A DNA stretch of 64,000 nucleotides, taken from positions 5,456,001 through 5,520,000 of the forward strand of contig CDRNST010000123.1 in NCBI GenBank assembly GCA_977016875.1, written 5' to 3'. The notes under the pieces are model-generated. The model saw nothing but the letters and a program-made list of their open reading frames with translations. It searched no databases and had not been told where the DNA came from. Shown here in pieces: positions 38,252-45,707 of this stretch; the stretch's first letter is position 1, and the number at the start of each line of letters is the position of its first letter. This DNA is from Pavona decussata. Its lineage: Eukaryota. The translations under genes were made by a program, and so were the position numbers.

Positions 38252-38560
38252 TTAGTAAAACCCTGTAAAGAGCGCATTGACACGGATGGGTTCATTAAGG
38301 TAAACAGCCCATTGACCATCACCATAGTTACGGGCCACGCCCTGTGTTACTTTGTATTCCTCGTAACTGTGATTGGTTAATTCTAGTCTAATGAGGTCAC
38401 GCAAGTCATAACGTCCTTGGACCGGTGTTACGTCACTTCTCCGGGACAGCGTGATGTGCGCAGTGTCTCCCTTGCCAATGGTTGGCATGATTGCCAAATC
38501 GTTGTATGACACAGGAATGAAGCTAGTTTCTGACCCCTGAGACAGACATCTCAAGGCTTC
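38252..38560 (-). CDS. CNP: CNP-like exon 5 (second HxT motif, stop)
   Basis: GKGDTAHITL, PVQGRYDL, ALFTGFY*. Confidence 0.9.
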   Translation of the reverse strand, partial: EALRCLSQGSETSFIPVSYNDLAIMPTIGKGDTAHITLSRRSDVTPVQGRYDLRDLIRLELTNHSYEEYKVTQGVARNYGDGQWAVYLNEPIRVNALFTGFY

Positions 38561-41500
38561 CTGGAAAATAAGATACATGAATATACCTTTTAAATAATGG
38601 GAAAATCAAAAATCAGGTTAGAGCACTTTGATTTGACCCTCAATACTAATGCTTTTCAGGGAAAATGAAACTATCAGGAGAGAAACAACTCCAGCTGCAA
38701 TCAGGCAGATTGGGACTTGAACACAGGACCTTCTTCTGTTTGTATAGAAAAACCGGTGACAATTTTCCGCCAATAGAACGGTTTAATTCTCGAACCTTTC
38801 CATTTGTATGGAAAAAAACAGTTGTTCCGTTTGGGAAATCAAATGGAACAGTTCTTTCCAAGGGTAATTTTGGGAACTAAACCGCGTATTTCTCATCAAG
38901 GGGCATGGTACGTGAGTGTGATGAAACAAATGGTTCAGTGATATTCTGGTCATTTCGCCGATAAAAACCAGAAAAGAGGAAAACGTCTGAAGTTATTCCT
39001 TTTTTTTCCGAAAATTTCCAGTGGGAAGGACTGTTCCATTTACTGTCCCACCGGAACGGCCGTTTTTTCCATTCAAATGAAAGTGCTCCAGAATTCAAAC
39101 TTGTCCGATGCCATGACTACACGTTCACACTGCCTGCTATGCTCCAAATTTATGTATAAGTTCTATCACGTGAAAACTCTTGTGTTCAGGAGTGACTAGT
39201 GGTTGGACATGATCAGTGTTCCGTTAGTCTCTATATTAAGTTGGAGGGTACATTTACAGGTCCTTGTATACAGCTGTTTCGACAAAGGTTGCCCAAAAAG
39301 AGCTTGAAAGCGTACGCGACAATGCCGAAAGGTAGTCTGGGAAATACCCAATAAATTTCAATAAAAGCTCAGAATCCATATTTCCCGCCATATCAAGTGT
39401 TCACTGTACGGTCGAGGCATTTTAGATTCTGAGCTTTATTGAAATTTATTGGGTATTTCCCAGACTACCTTTCGGCATTGTTGCGTACGCTTTTGCGCTT
39501 TTTTTGGACAACCTTTGTCAAAACAGCTGTATATCAGAGATATTCACTTACAAGGTGAAGTATTGTATTGACATCGCAACTCCCTTCTTCTAAATCCAAC
39601 GAATCAAGATTATTCCAAAGTGTAATCTGTTGTGAATTAAGTTTGACTCTGGCTGTGACAGTTCTAGGTGTGATTGTCCAGGCAATTATCACCAGGGTGG
39701 TCACTGACCCTAGGGCATCTTGAACAGCAGGTGATGCGACATAGTTATTCGCTCTGCTTTGCTGGGCTTTCCCTCTTTTGTTGAAGAATGCAGTCATGTG
39801 GAGATGGTCGTGTGGACGTTCCAGGCAAGACAGTGATGACAACATTGTTTCACTGGAAGTTTGCAAGGAGACTGAGCATCCTAAAAAAGACAACAACATT
39901 GTGTTTGTAAGGTTTGATCCTCTATTGAACAATTAAGCAACACCAACACTTAATTCAGACACGTGAATTTATGCATCAAAACTGACAGTGTAATAATTCT
40001 AGGGACCGTTCATTTTTATGAGATGGTGGGAGGGGGGGTGGGATTTGGGGAAGCGTCATTTGGAAATTGTATGACCGGTCCCTTACAGTTTTCTCTGCCA
40101 GGTGCTACAGACACTGAGTTTTCAACATGATTTGCCAGTCACTGTGTGCTAGATTTACTCATCGTGGTTCCTGTCAAAGCAACTAAAAAAGCATTGCAAC
40201 AAGCCCAGCCTGCCATCATTGGGAGCTGCCATGACCTCATGCAACTTACAGAAGTGTAGTTATAAATTTGCAGGGTTCTGACCTTGAAGCTGTGGCCTGG
40301 AAGGGTATTGTTTTCAGAGTTTTTGTCTTGATCATGTTATCAATTTCACCACTTTTTGTGTCAAACACCCAATCTTTTTGGAATTGGTTTGAGTTTATCA
40401 CAAGACCACGAATGTCTTAAATTGACAAAACTTTAGGACACTTTCCAAACCAATCTGCCAACATCTATCCTGGCAGATGAAACACTCAAACACCATGCAC
40501 TTCTGACTAGTCTAAAAAATAAATCATTAAAAGTAAACTTGCCATGCTCATCTTGCACACTGTTGTTACCATGAACATCTTTGAATGAAGGGATTTTTGT
40601 ACAGCACTCATTCAAAACTCCAAACAATCCGTCTTTCAAAGCCTTAGAACTGTTTTCTGAGAGAAACCATCCATAATAAACAGCAATTATTTGTTCAAAC
40701 TCGGCCAACAGCTCCCCCAGAACTTCCTCTGAGACTTTATGATGGTTCCTCAAGGCCAAATCAGAAATATTATATTTCCAGCTGGTCTTTGGTTCCACTA
40801 ATACCACATAGTAGCCAGCACTGCGAGCTATATCAACATAATCATACAGCAACGTCTTCTTGATATTCATGTTATCTGTGAAAAAAAAAACACCAACTTT
40901 TTAATCATATAATGATAGTCTTTCTTTCCAAACTTGGATTCTGGATGTGCTAAAGGGTGTATAATCAGTCTCTCATTTACAAGAAAACTATGTGTTAATT
41001 AATGACACAAAAAGTTTCTCCACAAATATGCCCCATCCTTCCTTAGGATACGGTCAAATGTTTTTGTTGTTGTTTTGTTTTTTTGTTTTCATCTACACTG
41101 TATTTATTGCAGTATTTTTTATTTTCCCAATTCAGAGCTCTCTATCTACCTGTACTTATCCAATTACCTATCTACAGGTCTACTTAGGGCGCTTTCCATT
41201 TTTCAGAACTGGCCGGCGAGTGCGATCCCCGGGGTGGGGGGGGGGGGGGGGCTACTCCCATAATTTTTAGCCGGGGGTGTGCCGCTGGAACTCTGAGAAC
41301 CTTAACCTATACTAGACAATGTTAATCTTTATTTTGCAACCCTATTCTAGACTAAACGCCGAAAATCCCTACCCAGCTATCCCAGACCTATTTCCGATTT
41401 TTAAATGTCATTTTAATATCGGGAAACTCTCTGACTAAATTCTTCAAGCAACTGATTAGTTTCACAGAAAATGATACCCTATTCTAGACCACAACTCTCT

Positions 41501-44500
41501 GATTTCTATACCCTATTCGAGAGTAAACTCGCTGAAAACCATACCCTTCACAGCGGCACATACCTATATAGCTCATATATGGGAGTACCCCCCCCGCCCC
41601 CGTTCGATCATTTTGCAAACGGAATACACCAATTTAAAAAGGCAGTTATGTTTTATACTGTATGCCCCTCACCTGTTTTGATTGCTTCAAAATGTTGCAC
41701 ACTACTCTCAGAATGTGCCATTTTGAAGAATTTGAAGAATCAGTCCCTCAAATTGGTGCACCCCATTTACGGACTTACCAGTCTGGCCCCAGTTGTTCAA
41801 AGGCCGGATAACTTTATCCGCTGGATAAGGCACTCTTCAGCGTCTAAAATATACTTCACGTTAAATGTTGTCCAAGGTTTTTGTACACCCCCCAACTGAG
41901 CTCTGGTTAGAGTGTGCATATTCGCTTGTGCACGAGGAAATACTGAAATCTTTGCACAGATTGAAACTGTCGGATAGTGACTTATCCACTGGATAAAGTT
42001 ATCCGGCTTTTGAACAACTGGGGCCTGGATGGCCAGTTCTGACAGATGGAAAGCACCTACCTGACTGCCTGTCTGCTTGATAGTTTGTGTGACCCTGCCT
42101 GTCTGTCTGTCTGTCTGCCATTCTAGGTATCAAACTATGGCACAATGGTGGGAATCAAGTGTTCTCACCACTGTGCCATCTCTTTTCCCAACTCAATTTG
42201 ATACAGTACCTATAATAACAACAGGTGTTCCATTTTGGCAGGCCTGCTTTGCTTTTTCTTGGCACATCATGTGCTGTCTTGTTTCACACTCCTCCACATC
42301 TCGGAAATCATCTACTGAACACTTCACAGCCAGGTCACCATAAACTTGTTTTATTTGCTGAGCAACTACTGATTTTCCACTTCCTGGCAATCCTCGCATT
42401 ATAAACACGACTTTAGAGTTCATGATGAACTTGATGCAGTGATCCTCTGTCAAAAATGGGAAGTTCTGAGTTTCTAAATTATCCCCTTCATCCTCATTCT
42501 GAAAGAAATTTTAGAAAATCTATATTAAGTTTGGTGCATCTTAAATTGCTACTGTGTCCAGGAGGCAAAGGGGTGATATATTCATCCTGGTTAAGGGGTG
42601 TAAATTTCCCAGTTAAACACCCCAGGTATTCTATACTGTACTCACTGGTTCCAAATCTGTTTAGTTCTGGACTAGGGTATAGTTTTGGACCATTTTGGTC
42701 TGCAACATTACCTGAAATAGGATACAGATATTTTTCTTAAATTTCTCTGACACAGGTGTGTTAATTTGGTATTACAGTGCTAAGCTCAATTTCTGCCACT
42801 CTGCTGGGTCTGGAACTTCCTCCCCTTTCAGGGCCAAAGTGCGTGTTCGTTTCCCCAAACAGCAGCTGGCTATTATTATGCATTTTTATGTTCTTTTGGC
42901 TGGGAAAATAAGGCCTCAGTGGCTTAATATTTTAACATTCTCATTACATTTTCAGTGTGCCTGTTCATAAATGGTTATGGAAAACTCTTCAGAAAACAAG
43001 CACATTTAATTGGCCAAACGCACCCCTAACACAGTAACACAGTTAACACTAAACTTGCATGAAAATCCCCAAAAATGTGACTCTGAAAAACTACTCACTC
43101 ACATGATAATCTTTCGCATAACTATGCACACAACACTTCAAATTCAAAATGTCTCTGAGCGAGTGCAGGCGCGCTCTATTCATGCATCACACCATGGGTG
43201 GATGCCATTGAAAATAGAGGCCTAAAGTGTGACATCACAAATATTTGAATTTTCAACATTATTGGTCAGGATTTATTAACTAATGATGTTTGAAAAGAGC
43301 ACGCCTCCATACAAATTCGTCTAATTTTGCCTCAGTTCCAAACATTCAAAACTGCACGACTAGGCAAAATTAGAAGGCTTTGTCTGGAAACATCATAGCA
43401 TAAAAGTGCCAATTTTTCACCCACAAATTACAAAAAGATTCTGATTTTTGGCAAGTAGGCATTTTTTCATCACTCTCTTTCAGAATATCTCAGCAAATCT
43501 CATAATTTCATAAATTTAGTTTTAGTGACATCAATCATCACTTTAGGTCTCAATAACATGGAGGGGGTGGGGGTGGGGGGTAAATTATATTAAGCATGGA
43601 GAAGTGGACAAAACCGCAGGGGAAAGCCTTATATTCCCAGATATTACATGTTACTGGGATATTATTAGGTGGGGAATCCAGTGGCCAAGAAACAAACAAC
43701 AAGTTCAAGTTTACTTTTTCCCACTATAAATGAAAATATTAAATGATAAAATAAAGGTGGGAAGGAAGCCCATGAAAAACCATAAGGCTTTTAAACAATG
43801 GGCTCCCTCTATTACGTATTATTCACAGTTTAATGTACAGTAGAATAATGACAAAATCAATGGTAAAGTAAAAATAGAACAGAGCTAAGACGTTACTTAA
43901 AATTACCTATATGTTTAAAGCATGATAAGGCTAAAAAGAAGTGAAAATCGAAAAAGTGAAAAAAAAATTATAGGTTTACATTAAGAGGAACCCTTTCAGT
44001 TTCGAAGTAAAAGAGACAATACTTGTTGCACTTTGAATTTCAGAGCTATAATAAATTTTTTGCCCTAAATTCTTCTAAGAAAATTAAAGAATTTAGCAAA
44101 AGGGCAACAAATTTTAAAATTGTATCTTTTGGGTAGCCAGAACCAGACTCGGGTGACCATGGCGCTGGGTTTTGATTCTTGATTGCTGATGATTTGTTTT
44201 GTGATTTTGACTTCCAACGTCGACAACAATTTTCATTTCTCTGAACCCTGACAACCCACCCTAATTTTGATATAAGCTTCAGCGAATGCCGTACCCGGAA
44301 GAGAAGCGGAAATGAAAGTGAGAACCTTATGAAATGTTTTAGAGTTATCCACCTGATTTAGAAACCACAGATTTAAAACTTTGTTCACTACTGCTCACAT
44401 CGGTGGAAAAATCAAGATTAGCTGGACCATAATTTAAGCCCTGAGCTTAAACTGTCACTGTATATTAGCATCTTTGATATTTCTCTCCCCAATCAAAAAC

Positions 44501-44632
44501 AATGATAAATATAGCTACACAACATACCTTTTTTCGGCGATACTTTCTGGTTGTAAGCACATAGATTGCTACAGATGCAAAAGAAACAGTAAGGCCGATA
44601 CCTAAACCAACTGCAAAACGTCGGGAATTCAT
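38252..44632 (-). CDS. CNP: 2',3'-cyclic-nucleotide 3'-phosphodiesterase (CNPase-like): N-terminal TM segment + P-loop kinase-like domain + 2H phosphodiesterase; 454 aa (463 aa from upstream ATG at 44659)
   Basis: Exons 44632-44528, 42498-42210, 40875-40543, 39880-39552, 38560-38252 are phase-consistent. Walker A FIMRGLPGSGKS; Walker B-like VVIIDNMN; LVEPKTSW; two HxT motifs (LHMTAFF, AHITLS); TPRTVTARVKL; ends ALFTGFY*. Confidence 0.92.
39271..39529. mobile_element. Near-perfect hairpin MITE in CNP intron 4
   Basis: TA|CAGCTGTTT...AAACAGCTG|TA; ~110-bp arms. Confidence 0.8.
39552..39880 (-). CDS. CNP: CNP-like exon 4 (first HxT motif)
   Basis: LHMTAFF, TPRTVTARVKL; gtaagt donor. Confidence 0.9.
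40543..40875 (-). CDS. CNP: CNP-like exon 3
   Basis: ttcacag acceptor; LVEPKTSW, LALRNHH, YYGWFL; G|gcaagt donor. Confidence 0.87.
41186..42058. mobile_element. Harbinger-like MITE with two nested insertions (CCCGG/EnSpm-like 41227-41602; Harbinger-like 41786-42024)
   Basis: AGGGCGCTTTCCATT...ATGGAAAGCACCT outer termini; inner CTACTCCCATA/TATGGGAGTAC; inner GCCCCAGTTGTTCAAA TIR with CTG TSD. Confidence 0.7.
42210..42498 (-). CDS. CNP: CNP-like exon 2 (Walker A)
   Basis: tttctttcag acceptor; FPFLTEDHCIKFIMNSKVVFIMRGLPGSGKS. Confidence 0.9.
43214..43554. mobile_element. Small TIR element
   Basis: GAGGCCTAAAGTGTGACATCAC / GTGACATCA..CACTTTAGGTCTC. Confidence 0.55.
44528..44632 (-). CDS. CNP: CNP-like exon 1 (signal-anchor MNSRRFAVGLGIGLTVSFASVAIYVLTTRKYRRKK)
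   Basis: ATG, hydrophobic stretch, AAG|gtatgt phase-0 donor matching exon 2. Confidence 0.75.
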
Positions 44633-44762
44633 AGTTTTACCGACAATTCTGCAGAACATTCACCCGTCATTGTTTGTTGGTTGGCAGAGCAGGGCCAGCC
44701 TCGTTCCCAGGGTCCCATCTCTTCCGGTTCCTCACCAAGAGCCGAAGGACTATGGGTACGCG

Positions 44763-44783
44763 ATTGGTTCCTGGTCACGTGAC
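44763..44783. promoter_or_regulatory. CCAAT box plus palindromic E-box GTCACGTGAC upstream of CNP
   Basis: ATTGG at 44763-44767 and GTCACGTGAC at 44774-44783, ~105-125 bp 5' of the upstream ATG. Confidence 0.35.
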
Positions 44784-45707
44784 TGCAGACGATAAACTTC
44801 TCCCCAGTGGGATCGGCGTACACTCGCTCTCGTTTTTTTTTTTTATTTATTAATTTGTTCCTAAGATCCGAACAGAGATTTTCAAGCGGGCACGAAAACA
44901 AGAGAAATGCGAGAGATCATTCAGCGGTGTGCAAAAATCATATATATTAAAGTATTAAAGAGTTTCACGACTGTGTAAAACATTTATTAATGCAGTCTAG
45001 CCTTTCGTAAACGTACACCCTTGGGGCCAGAAAAAGGGCCCACTTAAGAGAGGTGTCCGGTTCAATGTAGGAGATTAAAAATGCAGTGTTTGTATGTAGC
45101 TGAGAACATGGCCAAGTGTCCGCTTACGAGAGGTGTCCGCCTACGGGAGGTGTCCGTTAGCAGAGGTTCGACTGTGCCAAACGTTATGAGGAGCCATAAT
45201 CAGGGATGGAGACCGTAACGAAATGCCATTTTGACGTGTGGGCTTGTACCCACGTGTTGTACCAAAAAATCTATTTTTAGAAAAAATTGCGCCATACACG
45301 CGTGCGCGCACGCGTTTTTATGGCCAAGATCCCGCCTGGAGAAATTGAAATTTTTTTCTACCCGTTCAAAATGGTGTACAAATTTTAAAATTCTGCCAGG
45401 GAATTTCTCCTCAGTACCCACATTTAAGGAATTAGACTCTCACAACGAAAAGGTAATAAGAAGCAGTAAGCTTTTCGGCAAAAAGAAGTAATCGAGAAAT
45501 TCACTAATTCTGACCGATGTTGAAAAATTTGGCACTGATCTGTGAACAAAATCTGCTCAATTCGACAGCTTTTAGCTTAAGCTACGTAATTTCTGCCAAT
45601 AAACTGAATTCTTTTTAACCTTTCGCTCGGTAATCCCTAACTTGTTTAACCATTACCTGTTTACCAGGCACTCAGCATTAATGTAGTAAGCCTATGTCAT
45701 GAGTGAT

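Follow-up and report, generated by a model that had tools for sequence, protein, structure and literature searches.

A coral CNPase-family gene with a conserved N-terminal helix, predicted to be a membrane anchor, and no prenylated tail

The window analysed here is a 64,000-nucleotide stretch of the coral Pavona decussata (assembly GCA_977016875.1, contig CDRNST010000123.1, positions 5,456,001 to 5,520,000 of the forward strand). It contains a minus-strand gene of five exons, read from the window sequence at 44659-38252, whose product, 463 residues long from ATG 44659 or 454 from ATG 44632, belongs to the CNPase family and combines a kinase with a 2H domain. The exons and motifs of the gene are listed below in window coordinates.

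44659-44528, minus strand: exon 1, open from ATG 44659, with ATG 44632 as the probable conserved start
44549-44617, minus strand: codons of the hydrophobic helix, residues 15-37 from ATG 44659, or 6-28 from ATG 44632
44528-44548, minus strand: basic flank RKYRRKK, adjoining the helix, with the acidic linker next at the start of exon 2
42498-42210, minus strand: exon 2, with the acidic linker, FPFL, the P-loop and CSVDDFR; colinear with RNA contigs
42393-42370, minus strand: P-loop GLPGSGKS, in exon 2
42318-42301, minus strand: catalytic Asp/Arg motif CSVDDFR, in exon 2; a nine-residue deletion site lies just after 42301
40875-40543, minus strand: exon 3, with the remaining kinase domain (DNMN, the lid motif RNHHKV and YYGWF) and a GC-AG donor
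39880-39552, minus strand: exon 4, first half of the 2H (CNPase) domain, with HxT motif 1
39800-39792, minus strand: HxT motif 1, HMT, in exon 4
38560-38252, minus strand: exon 5, second half of the 2H domain, with HxT motif 2, LFTGFY and the stop codon TAA at 38254-38252
38458-38450, minus strand: HxT motif 2, HIT, in exon 5

The original prediction, made from the letters of the window, had described a kinase plus 2H protein of the CNPase family, and profile and structure-based comparisons bear this out. The Pfam profile CNPase (PF05881, cut-off 25 bits) matches exon 4 with an E-value of 6.7e-12 (45.9 bits) and exon 5 with an E-value of 3.6e-12 (46.8 bits, profile positions 127-213 of 236). 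Human CNPase (1woj) aligns to the same two exons with E-values of 3.9e-6 and 1.8e-8, the last query residue of exon 5 reaching the end of the crystallised domain. Both HxT motifs, HMTA and HITL, align with those of human CNPase and are invariant columns in the family alignment. Fused to the N-terminal side of the 2H domain is a P-loop kinase of the polynucleotide kinase (PNK) clade, with GLPGSGKS, DDFR and RNHHKV, the arrangement of the amphioxus-type PNK/cyclic phosphodiesterase (PNK/CPDase); the Walker-B-like strand reads VVIIDNMN. Single kinase exons gave only P-loop-level or chance matches against PDB sequences. A profile built from 24 full-length family members matches the CNPase catalytic domain with an E-value of 3e-56, and its N-terminal half matches PSTK (1e-6), the kinase domain of Clostridium thermocellum Pnkp (5e-5) and T4 PNK (2e-3). 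Similarity to the Trl1 module is at the level of the P-loop only (Rhizopus kinase, 8e-4 with the same profile).

Relatives were collected by an exhaustive search with exon 5, which gave 93 hits, and by a word search with the five exons as separate alignment rows, which gave 851 proteins. The searches used exons, while the joined spliced protein (hereafter the window protein) was used for hydropathy, for local alignment to the retrieved proteins and for the tree. The closest named proteins are scleractinian and, together with the coral metatranscriptomes described below, point to a stony coral as the source. Five scleractinian orthologue clusters were found, with the following identities to the window protein.

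P0136: 67% identical
P0141: 66% identical
P0140, Oculina patagonica (ACROYT_G007488): 60% identical
P0132: 58% identical
P0143, Pocillopora damicornis XP_027042797 and P. verrucosa XP_058943370, annotated in RefSeq as 'CNP(-like)': 51% identical

All five clusters have a similar helix (Kyte-Doolittle 1.9-2.5), an RRKK-type flank (RRKK or RIKK), an acidic linker and NFPFL, and all five end in ...LFTGFY followed by at most two residues. Identity is 37-74% over the first 35 residues versus 54-69% for the rest, so that conservation of the anchor is about equal to that of the enzymatic part of the protein. Public coral models from Pocillopora and Oculina resemble the window protein in length (458-463 residues), in the helix and basic flank at the front and in the lack of a tail. 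RefSeq already contains coral orthologues with this N-terminus, and the arrangement of the anchor, a variant that has drawn little notice, is found again in other phyla; searches of open-access texts found nothing on an N-terminal membrane anchor or on myristoylation in invertebrate CNPase homologues, the coral models included. The CNPase Pfam domain has been recorded in every scleractinian studied and in neither of two sea anemones (PMC6214176, Table 2).

The orthologue P0136 was modelled with AlphaFold, giving a mean predicted local distance difference test score (pLDDT) of 80.5 and a predicted template modelling score (pTM) of 0.77. The model contains one helix at residues 3-41 (pLDDT ~65), in which the hydrophobic segment and the basic flank are continuous, followed by a confident kinase domain, a low-confidence linker and the 2H domain. 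A Foldseek search with this model, not with the window protein, matched mouse and human CNPase with an E-value of 8e-16 and a target TM-score of up to 0.87 (2H domain). The best 50 matches listed were CNPase catalytic domains only, with no kinase-domain match among them.

The gene is expressed and spliced. RNA contigs from public runs were placed on 38850-44849, a stretch that takes in exons 1 to 4. Four RNA runs containing small parts of the window are coral metatranscriptomes. Of the runs with exon joints, X2 and X10 derive from one sample and X1 from another, so that they represent two independent samples, not three. Because unique intron stretches stand at zero depth, X1, X2 and X10 behave as cDNA. 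The joint between exons 1 and 2 (44528/42498), on which the original prediction of an N-terminal anchor depended, is present in all three of these runs, skipping 2029 nucleotides with CT..AC on the plus strand, that is GT..AG on the gene strand. The joint between exons 2 and 3 (42210/40875) is likewise present in all three, and that between exons 3 and 4 (40542/39879) in X1 and X10; the latter can be shifted by up to two places, a shift of one giving G/GCAAGT...AG/, where the slashes mark exon boundaries. One X2 contig spans exons 1, 2 and 3, and one X10 contig spans exons 2, 3 and 4 together with 166 letters past the placed stretch. These three joints are supported by RNA reads, and that between exons 4 and 5 rests on colinearity with transcript-derived orthologues. 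Run X7, which is certain to be an RNA run, covers intronic repeats and no exons. Many differences between the RNA and the window were seen in exons 3 and 4, suggesting that the runs come from diverged individuals or populations.

All introns are of the GT-AG type except intron 3, whose donor is GC (G/GCAAGT). Ending exon 3 at 40543 adds nine residues, GNNSVQDEH, relative to a GT-ended model, and orthologues have residues matching them. An exon 3 ending at the GT near 40569 was ruled out, as the RNA contigs use the GC donor at 40542/40543. This donor (40541-40542) is used despite a GT in the same phase 27 nucleotides upstream, and the shorter form occurs in no contig.

The RNA contigs cover exon 1 at 44528-44640, which includes ATG 44632 and leaves ATG 44659 outside. 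The upstream ATG, directly preceded by a TGA stop, is not supported as the start, as its context is poor, the contigs stop at 44640 and the orthologues begin at the second Met. Four of the five cluster representatives begin at the Met equivalent to ATG 44632; that of P0132 has 12 extra, non-conserved residues upstream, and shorter members of its cluster start at the equivalent Met. Some transcript-derived coral versions also carry short, non-conserved in-frame extensions upstream, in keeping with the second ATG, 44632, as the conserved start. A soluble protein, with exon 1 mis-joined or serving as an untranslated leader, is very improbable and already largely refuted. The contigs stop 8 nucleotides upstream of ATG 44632, which leaves some room for this idea, but the exon 1/exon 2 junction recurs in three runs, the frame is open from ATG 44632 across that junction, no further in-frame Met occurs before the kinase fold, and the start is the same in transcript-derived orthologues of the five coral clusters.

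The translation of exon 1 contains a hydrophobic stretch of 23 residues and, directly after it, RKYRRKK; the hydrophobic helix of about 20 residues, the basic flank and the two in-frame ATGs of the original prediction (44659 and 44632) are all present. The best 19-residue window of the helix has a Kyte-Doolittle mean of 2.04 and is the sole segment above 1.6 in the protein, the next-best (1.47) lying in a buried strand of the 2H domain. Near its N-terminus the protein therefore has a single conserved segment, 19 residues or longer, that exceeds the Kyte-Doolittle threshold, as expected of a single-pass protein anchored at that end. Two RNA variants fall in the helix, L23F and G18C (window positions 44593 and 44608, both first codon positions), and both leave the segment hydrophobic. 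Because it is long, is the sole hydrophobic segment, is conserved and is directly followed by six Lys/Arg, the helix is most likely a membrane anchor, a prediction from sequence properties. A short N-terminus, a moderately hydrophobic helix and a basic cluster are found in the signal anchors of the mitochondrial outer membrane, of the Tom20/Tom70 type, which leave the catalytic part in the cytosol. A helix rich in Gly, Ser and Thr with a basic C-terminal flank is likewise a mitochondrial outer-membrane pattern, and P450-type anchors of the endoplasmic reticulum (ER) are similar. The likeness to Tom20/Tom70-type and P450-type anchors is one of general pattern, with no sequence relationship to the coral protein.

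At the other end, TAA directly follows LFTGFY, and no CaaX tail is encoded. The predicted stop at LFTGFY without a prenylated tail was thereby confirmed, the five coral clusters ending likewise, although an end at ...FTGFY proved to be nothing special, being the norm among non-vertebrate members. The same holds for the inverted anchoring logic that had been proposed for this protein: a conserved N-terminal anchor and the absence of CaaX both stand, but the combination is not unique to this coral.

Members of the family were found in hemichordates, echinoderms, amphioxus, many arthropods, molluscs, an annelid, a brachiopod, a hydrozoan and vertebrates. The N- and C-termini were compared in a census of the full-length retrieved members; isoforms and closely related species are counted separately in it, and the figures are not independent of one another. 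A CaaX-type motif ends 58 proteins; all named ones are vertebrate, and 58/58 group with vertebrates. None of these 58 has an N-terminal helix or an MG start, in agreement with the predicted contrast between the CaaX tail and an N-terminal anchor. The invertebrate ends are tail-less, and N-terminal anchors occur in several phyla. Among the 89 non-CaaX proteins, 18 carry at the N-terminus a hydrophobic segment whose mean is 1.6 or higher, namely those of corals, Acanthaster, Lytechinus isoform X2, Glandiceps, Ptychodera, Branchiostoma and Thrips; the Glandiceps equivalent of the basic flank is RYRHRKR. An N-myristoylation consensus is present in 32/89 (Schistocerca, Timema, decapods, Darwinula, S. 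purpuratus isoform X2 and several others), another MG start in four, and neither feature in the remaining 35. In a maximum-likelihood tree of 63 members, the window protein lies in a fully supported coral clade and the vertebrates form one clade; any N-terminal anchor requires 15 changes on the gene tree. As judged from the retrieved sequences, the tail-less end is the non-vertebrate condition, the CaaX tail is one vertebrate innovation, and N-terminal anchors are frequent but labile. A statistic for mutual exclusion between N- and C-terminal anchors was dropped, since CaaX arose once in one vertebrate clade and counts as one event.

Isoforms or sister species of Thrips palmi (P0031/P0095/P0096), sea urchins (P0146/P0147) and Acanthaster (P0020/P0094) vary between a helix, a myristoylation-type start and neither, a variation that recalls the vertebrate CNP1/CNP2 pair arising from alternative starts. 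Next to the coral clade, P0043, P0233, P0236 and P0078 have long Arg-Gly-rich N-termini in place of the helix. The start of the Lingula protein is polybasic, and in several decapods the start is rich in Trp and Cys (MxWLWWRC).

The closest characterised counterpart is the PNK/CPDase of amphioxus, Branchiostoma floridae (Englert et al. 2010, as cited in PMC10275265), which has both PNK and CPDase activity (PMC5434554). It has the same order as the coral protein, a P-loop PNK-like domain followed by a CNPase-type 2H domain, and the two share FPFL, RGLPGSGKS, DN(T/M)N, YxGWF and the two HxT motifs, with about 31% identity over ~410 residues. The amphioxus protein also lacks a CaaX tail, ending in ...FSGFY; it differs in two large loop insertions in the 2H domain that are not in the coral protein, whereas the coral kinase lacks the nine-residue hairpin. 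The reading of kinase plus 2H as an RNA end-healing module had already been established biochemically for the amphioxus enzyme (PMC5434554). The recombinant enzyme was studied in soluble form with a calculated mass of 60.3 kDa (PMC5434554, Fig. 2 legend). The old 520-residue B. floridae model (P0104) has a mass of 58.09 kDa, so that 60.3 kDa fits the short model plus a tag, and the current 544-residue RefSeq models (P0103) add 24 hydrophobic residues before the basic cluster. The amphioxus enzyme used in the biochemistry was probably without its natural hydrophobic N-terminus.

Vertebrate CNPase (CNP1/CNP2) and fish RICH have the same 2H catalytic domain and a PNK-like N-terminal domain and are also membrane-associated. 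They run past ...FTGYY into a basic tail with an isoprenylated CaaX motif, whereas the coral protein stops at LFTGFY. CNP2 has a 20-residue N-terminal mitochondrial targeting extension (PMC7246452), and mouse CNPase has no PNK activity (PMC5434554). The kinase-CPD module of the fungal and plant tRNA ligase Trl1 has the same chemistry and order, a 5'-OH kinase followed by a 2H domain that yields a 2'-phosphate (PMC10275265); there, a ligase domain precedes it in the same chain and a membrane anchor is absent, whereas the coral protein is predicted to be anchored. Yeast tRNA splicing takes place on the mitochondrial outer membrane, and the products of Ire1 are healed or degraded at the ER (PMC10275265).

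The explanation that we consider probable, with some reserve, is that the product of this expressed coral gene belongs to the CNPase and PNK/CPDase family and crosses a membrane once, near its N-terminus. It would face the cytosol from an intracellular membrane and act on 2',3'-cyclic-phosphate ends, with a possible 5'-OH kinase activity. A cytosolic position of the catalytic domains is predicted because the kinase needs ATP, the substrates would be RNA ends or nucleotides, and the myristoylated relatives can only be cytosolic. Several observations weigh against this explanation, some of them bearing on the anchor and others on the kinase.

With regard to the anchor, the helix is not a stable trait of the family, since at least six changes of its state are needed on the gene tree; it is also missing from the Hydractinia homologue. 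Given both, an ancestral helix is no more than a possibility. The net charges of the two flanks are also nearly balanced once the acidic linker is counted, and the predicted orientation rests mainly on the Lys/Arg cluster and the helix length. The N-terminal flank of the helix carries two Arg residues, which, with the small net charge difference across the helix, would suit a cleaved signal peptide or a type II anchor, making the enzyme luminal or extracellular, for example an ecto-2',3'-cyclic nucleoside monophosphate (2',3'-cNMP) phosphodiesterase. We regard such a topology as unlikely: a stretch of ~23 residues is long for the core of a signal peptide, six Lys/Arg follow it immediately, an ATP-dependent kinase and RNA substrates belong to the cytosol, homologues with N-myristoylation motifs are only cytosolic, and in the orthologue AlphaFold model the helix runs on into the basic flank.

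With regard to the kinase, the window protein lacks nine residues immediately after CSVDDFR in comparison with the five other coral clusters. In relatives these residues form a small hairpin with a Tyr conserved in at least 90% of them, and the public coral models keep the hairpin that the window species has lost. The deletion is real, because the RNA contigs are colinear with the genome there, and it places the loss of a near-invariant Tyr next to the catalytic DxxR. The window protein also has DNMN where relatives have DNTN. One X10 contig, with a depth of ~9, has an in-frame 3-nucleotide insertion at 42308, inside the DD pair; it is not in the same-sample run X2, and may be an allele or a contig error. 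In one coral lineage, P0141, the P-loop is broken (GLPESGKP) with the 2H motifs intact; to judge by the motif, this should abolish nucleotide binding, and it suggests loss of the kinase in one coral lineage. The motifs had been predicted to be intact, and indeed Walker A/B and both HxT motifs are present, but beside the catalytic Asp/Arg lies this species-specific nine-residue deletion, and the kinase may be decaying.

It is accordingly possible, though on balance doubtful, that the architecture is unchanged but the kinase inactive, the protein then serving, in the manner of vertebrate CNPase, as a scaffold or as a phosphodiesterase for 2',3'-cyclic nucleotides or RNA that is bound to a membrane. 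Besides the deletion, the change from DNTN to DNMN and the insertion allele, this alternative draws on mammalian CNPase, which has a gap at the same place and no PNK activity (PMC5434554), and on the loss of the P-loop in coral P0141 and in Acanthaster, Thrips and holothurian homologues. The P-loop, DxxR and the RN.H.V lid motif are nevertheless all present in the window protein, the kinase is complete in four of the five other coral clusters, and the insertion allele comes from that one contig only.

In the anchored, cytosol-facing enzyme that we favour, the helix of ~23 residues, the six Lys/Arg and the acidic linker would fix the protein in an intracellular membrane, either that of the ER or the outer mitochondrial one, so that the short N-terminus lies beyond the membrane and both catalytic domains lie in the cytosol. 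Acting on RNA or on free 2',3'-cNMP, the 2H domain would convert 2',3'-cyclic phosphate ends into 2'-phosphates, and the P-loop domain, if still active, would phosphorylate 5'-OH ends. The result would be a membrane-bound version of the amphioxus end-healing enzyme. These activities are proposed by analogy with amphioxus PNK/CPDase and yeast Trl1 (PMC5434554, PMC10275265). As a matter of speculation, the setting might be the mitochondrial surface, as in yeast tRNA splicing and CNP2 targeting, or the ER, as for the products of Ire1.

The introns of the gene contain several repeats. Intron 4 holds an inverted repeat at 39267-39365 and 39435-39533, with arms of 99 nucleotides that are 93% complementary and a 69-nucleotide spacer, resembling a miniature inverted-repeat transposable element. 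Contigs of all four runs pile up on it with a very high summed depth, which therefore marks an abundant, transcribed repeat family. Intron 2 holds a second inverted repeat, at 41773-41834 and 41976-42037, with 62-nucleotide arms that are 85% complementary; the high-depth contigs on it continue into unrelated sequence, indicating another dispersed element. At 41230-41262, intron 2 also has a long homopolymer C run on the gene strand, with one interrupting base.

For the family as a whole, the comparisons permit a more tentative proposal, which we put forward as a possibility rather than an expectation: membrane tethering, and not the type of anchor, may be the conserved trait of the animal CNPase and PNK/CPDase family. 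The tether would differ by lineage, being a helix in corals, echinoderms, hemichordates, amphioxus and thrips, N-myristoyl or palmitoyl motifs in many arthropods and a sea-urchin isoform, and a C-terminal prenyl group in vertebrates. The ancestral enzyme might then have repaired or marked 2',3'-cyclic-phosphate and 5'-OH RNA ends, with the mitochondrial outer membrane, the site of tRNA splicing in yeast, and the ER, the site of mRNA cleavage by Ire1, as candidate sites.

What CNPase does physiologically is still under debate, and work on its invertebrate relatives has been confined to soluble recombinant proteins. The coral anchor, its parallels in several phyla and the prenyl tail that vertebrates have instead lead to a testable idea, that the family works at a membrane surface. 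If tethering were indeed the conserved trait, the myelin enzyme would trace back to an RNA-end enzyme of the organelle surface. For coral biology the result is one annotated gene; for RNA repair and the evolution of myelin it offers a modest but usable lead.

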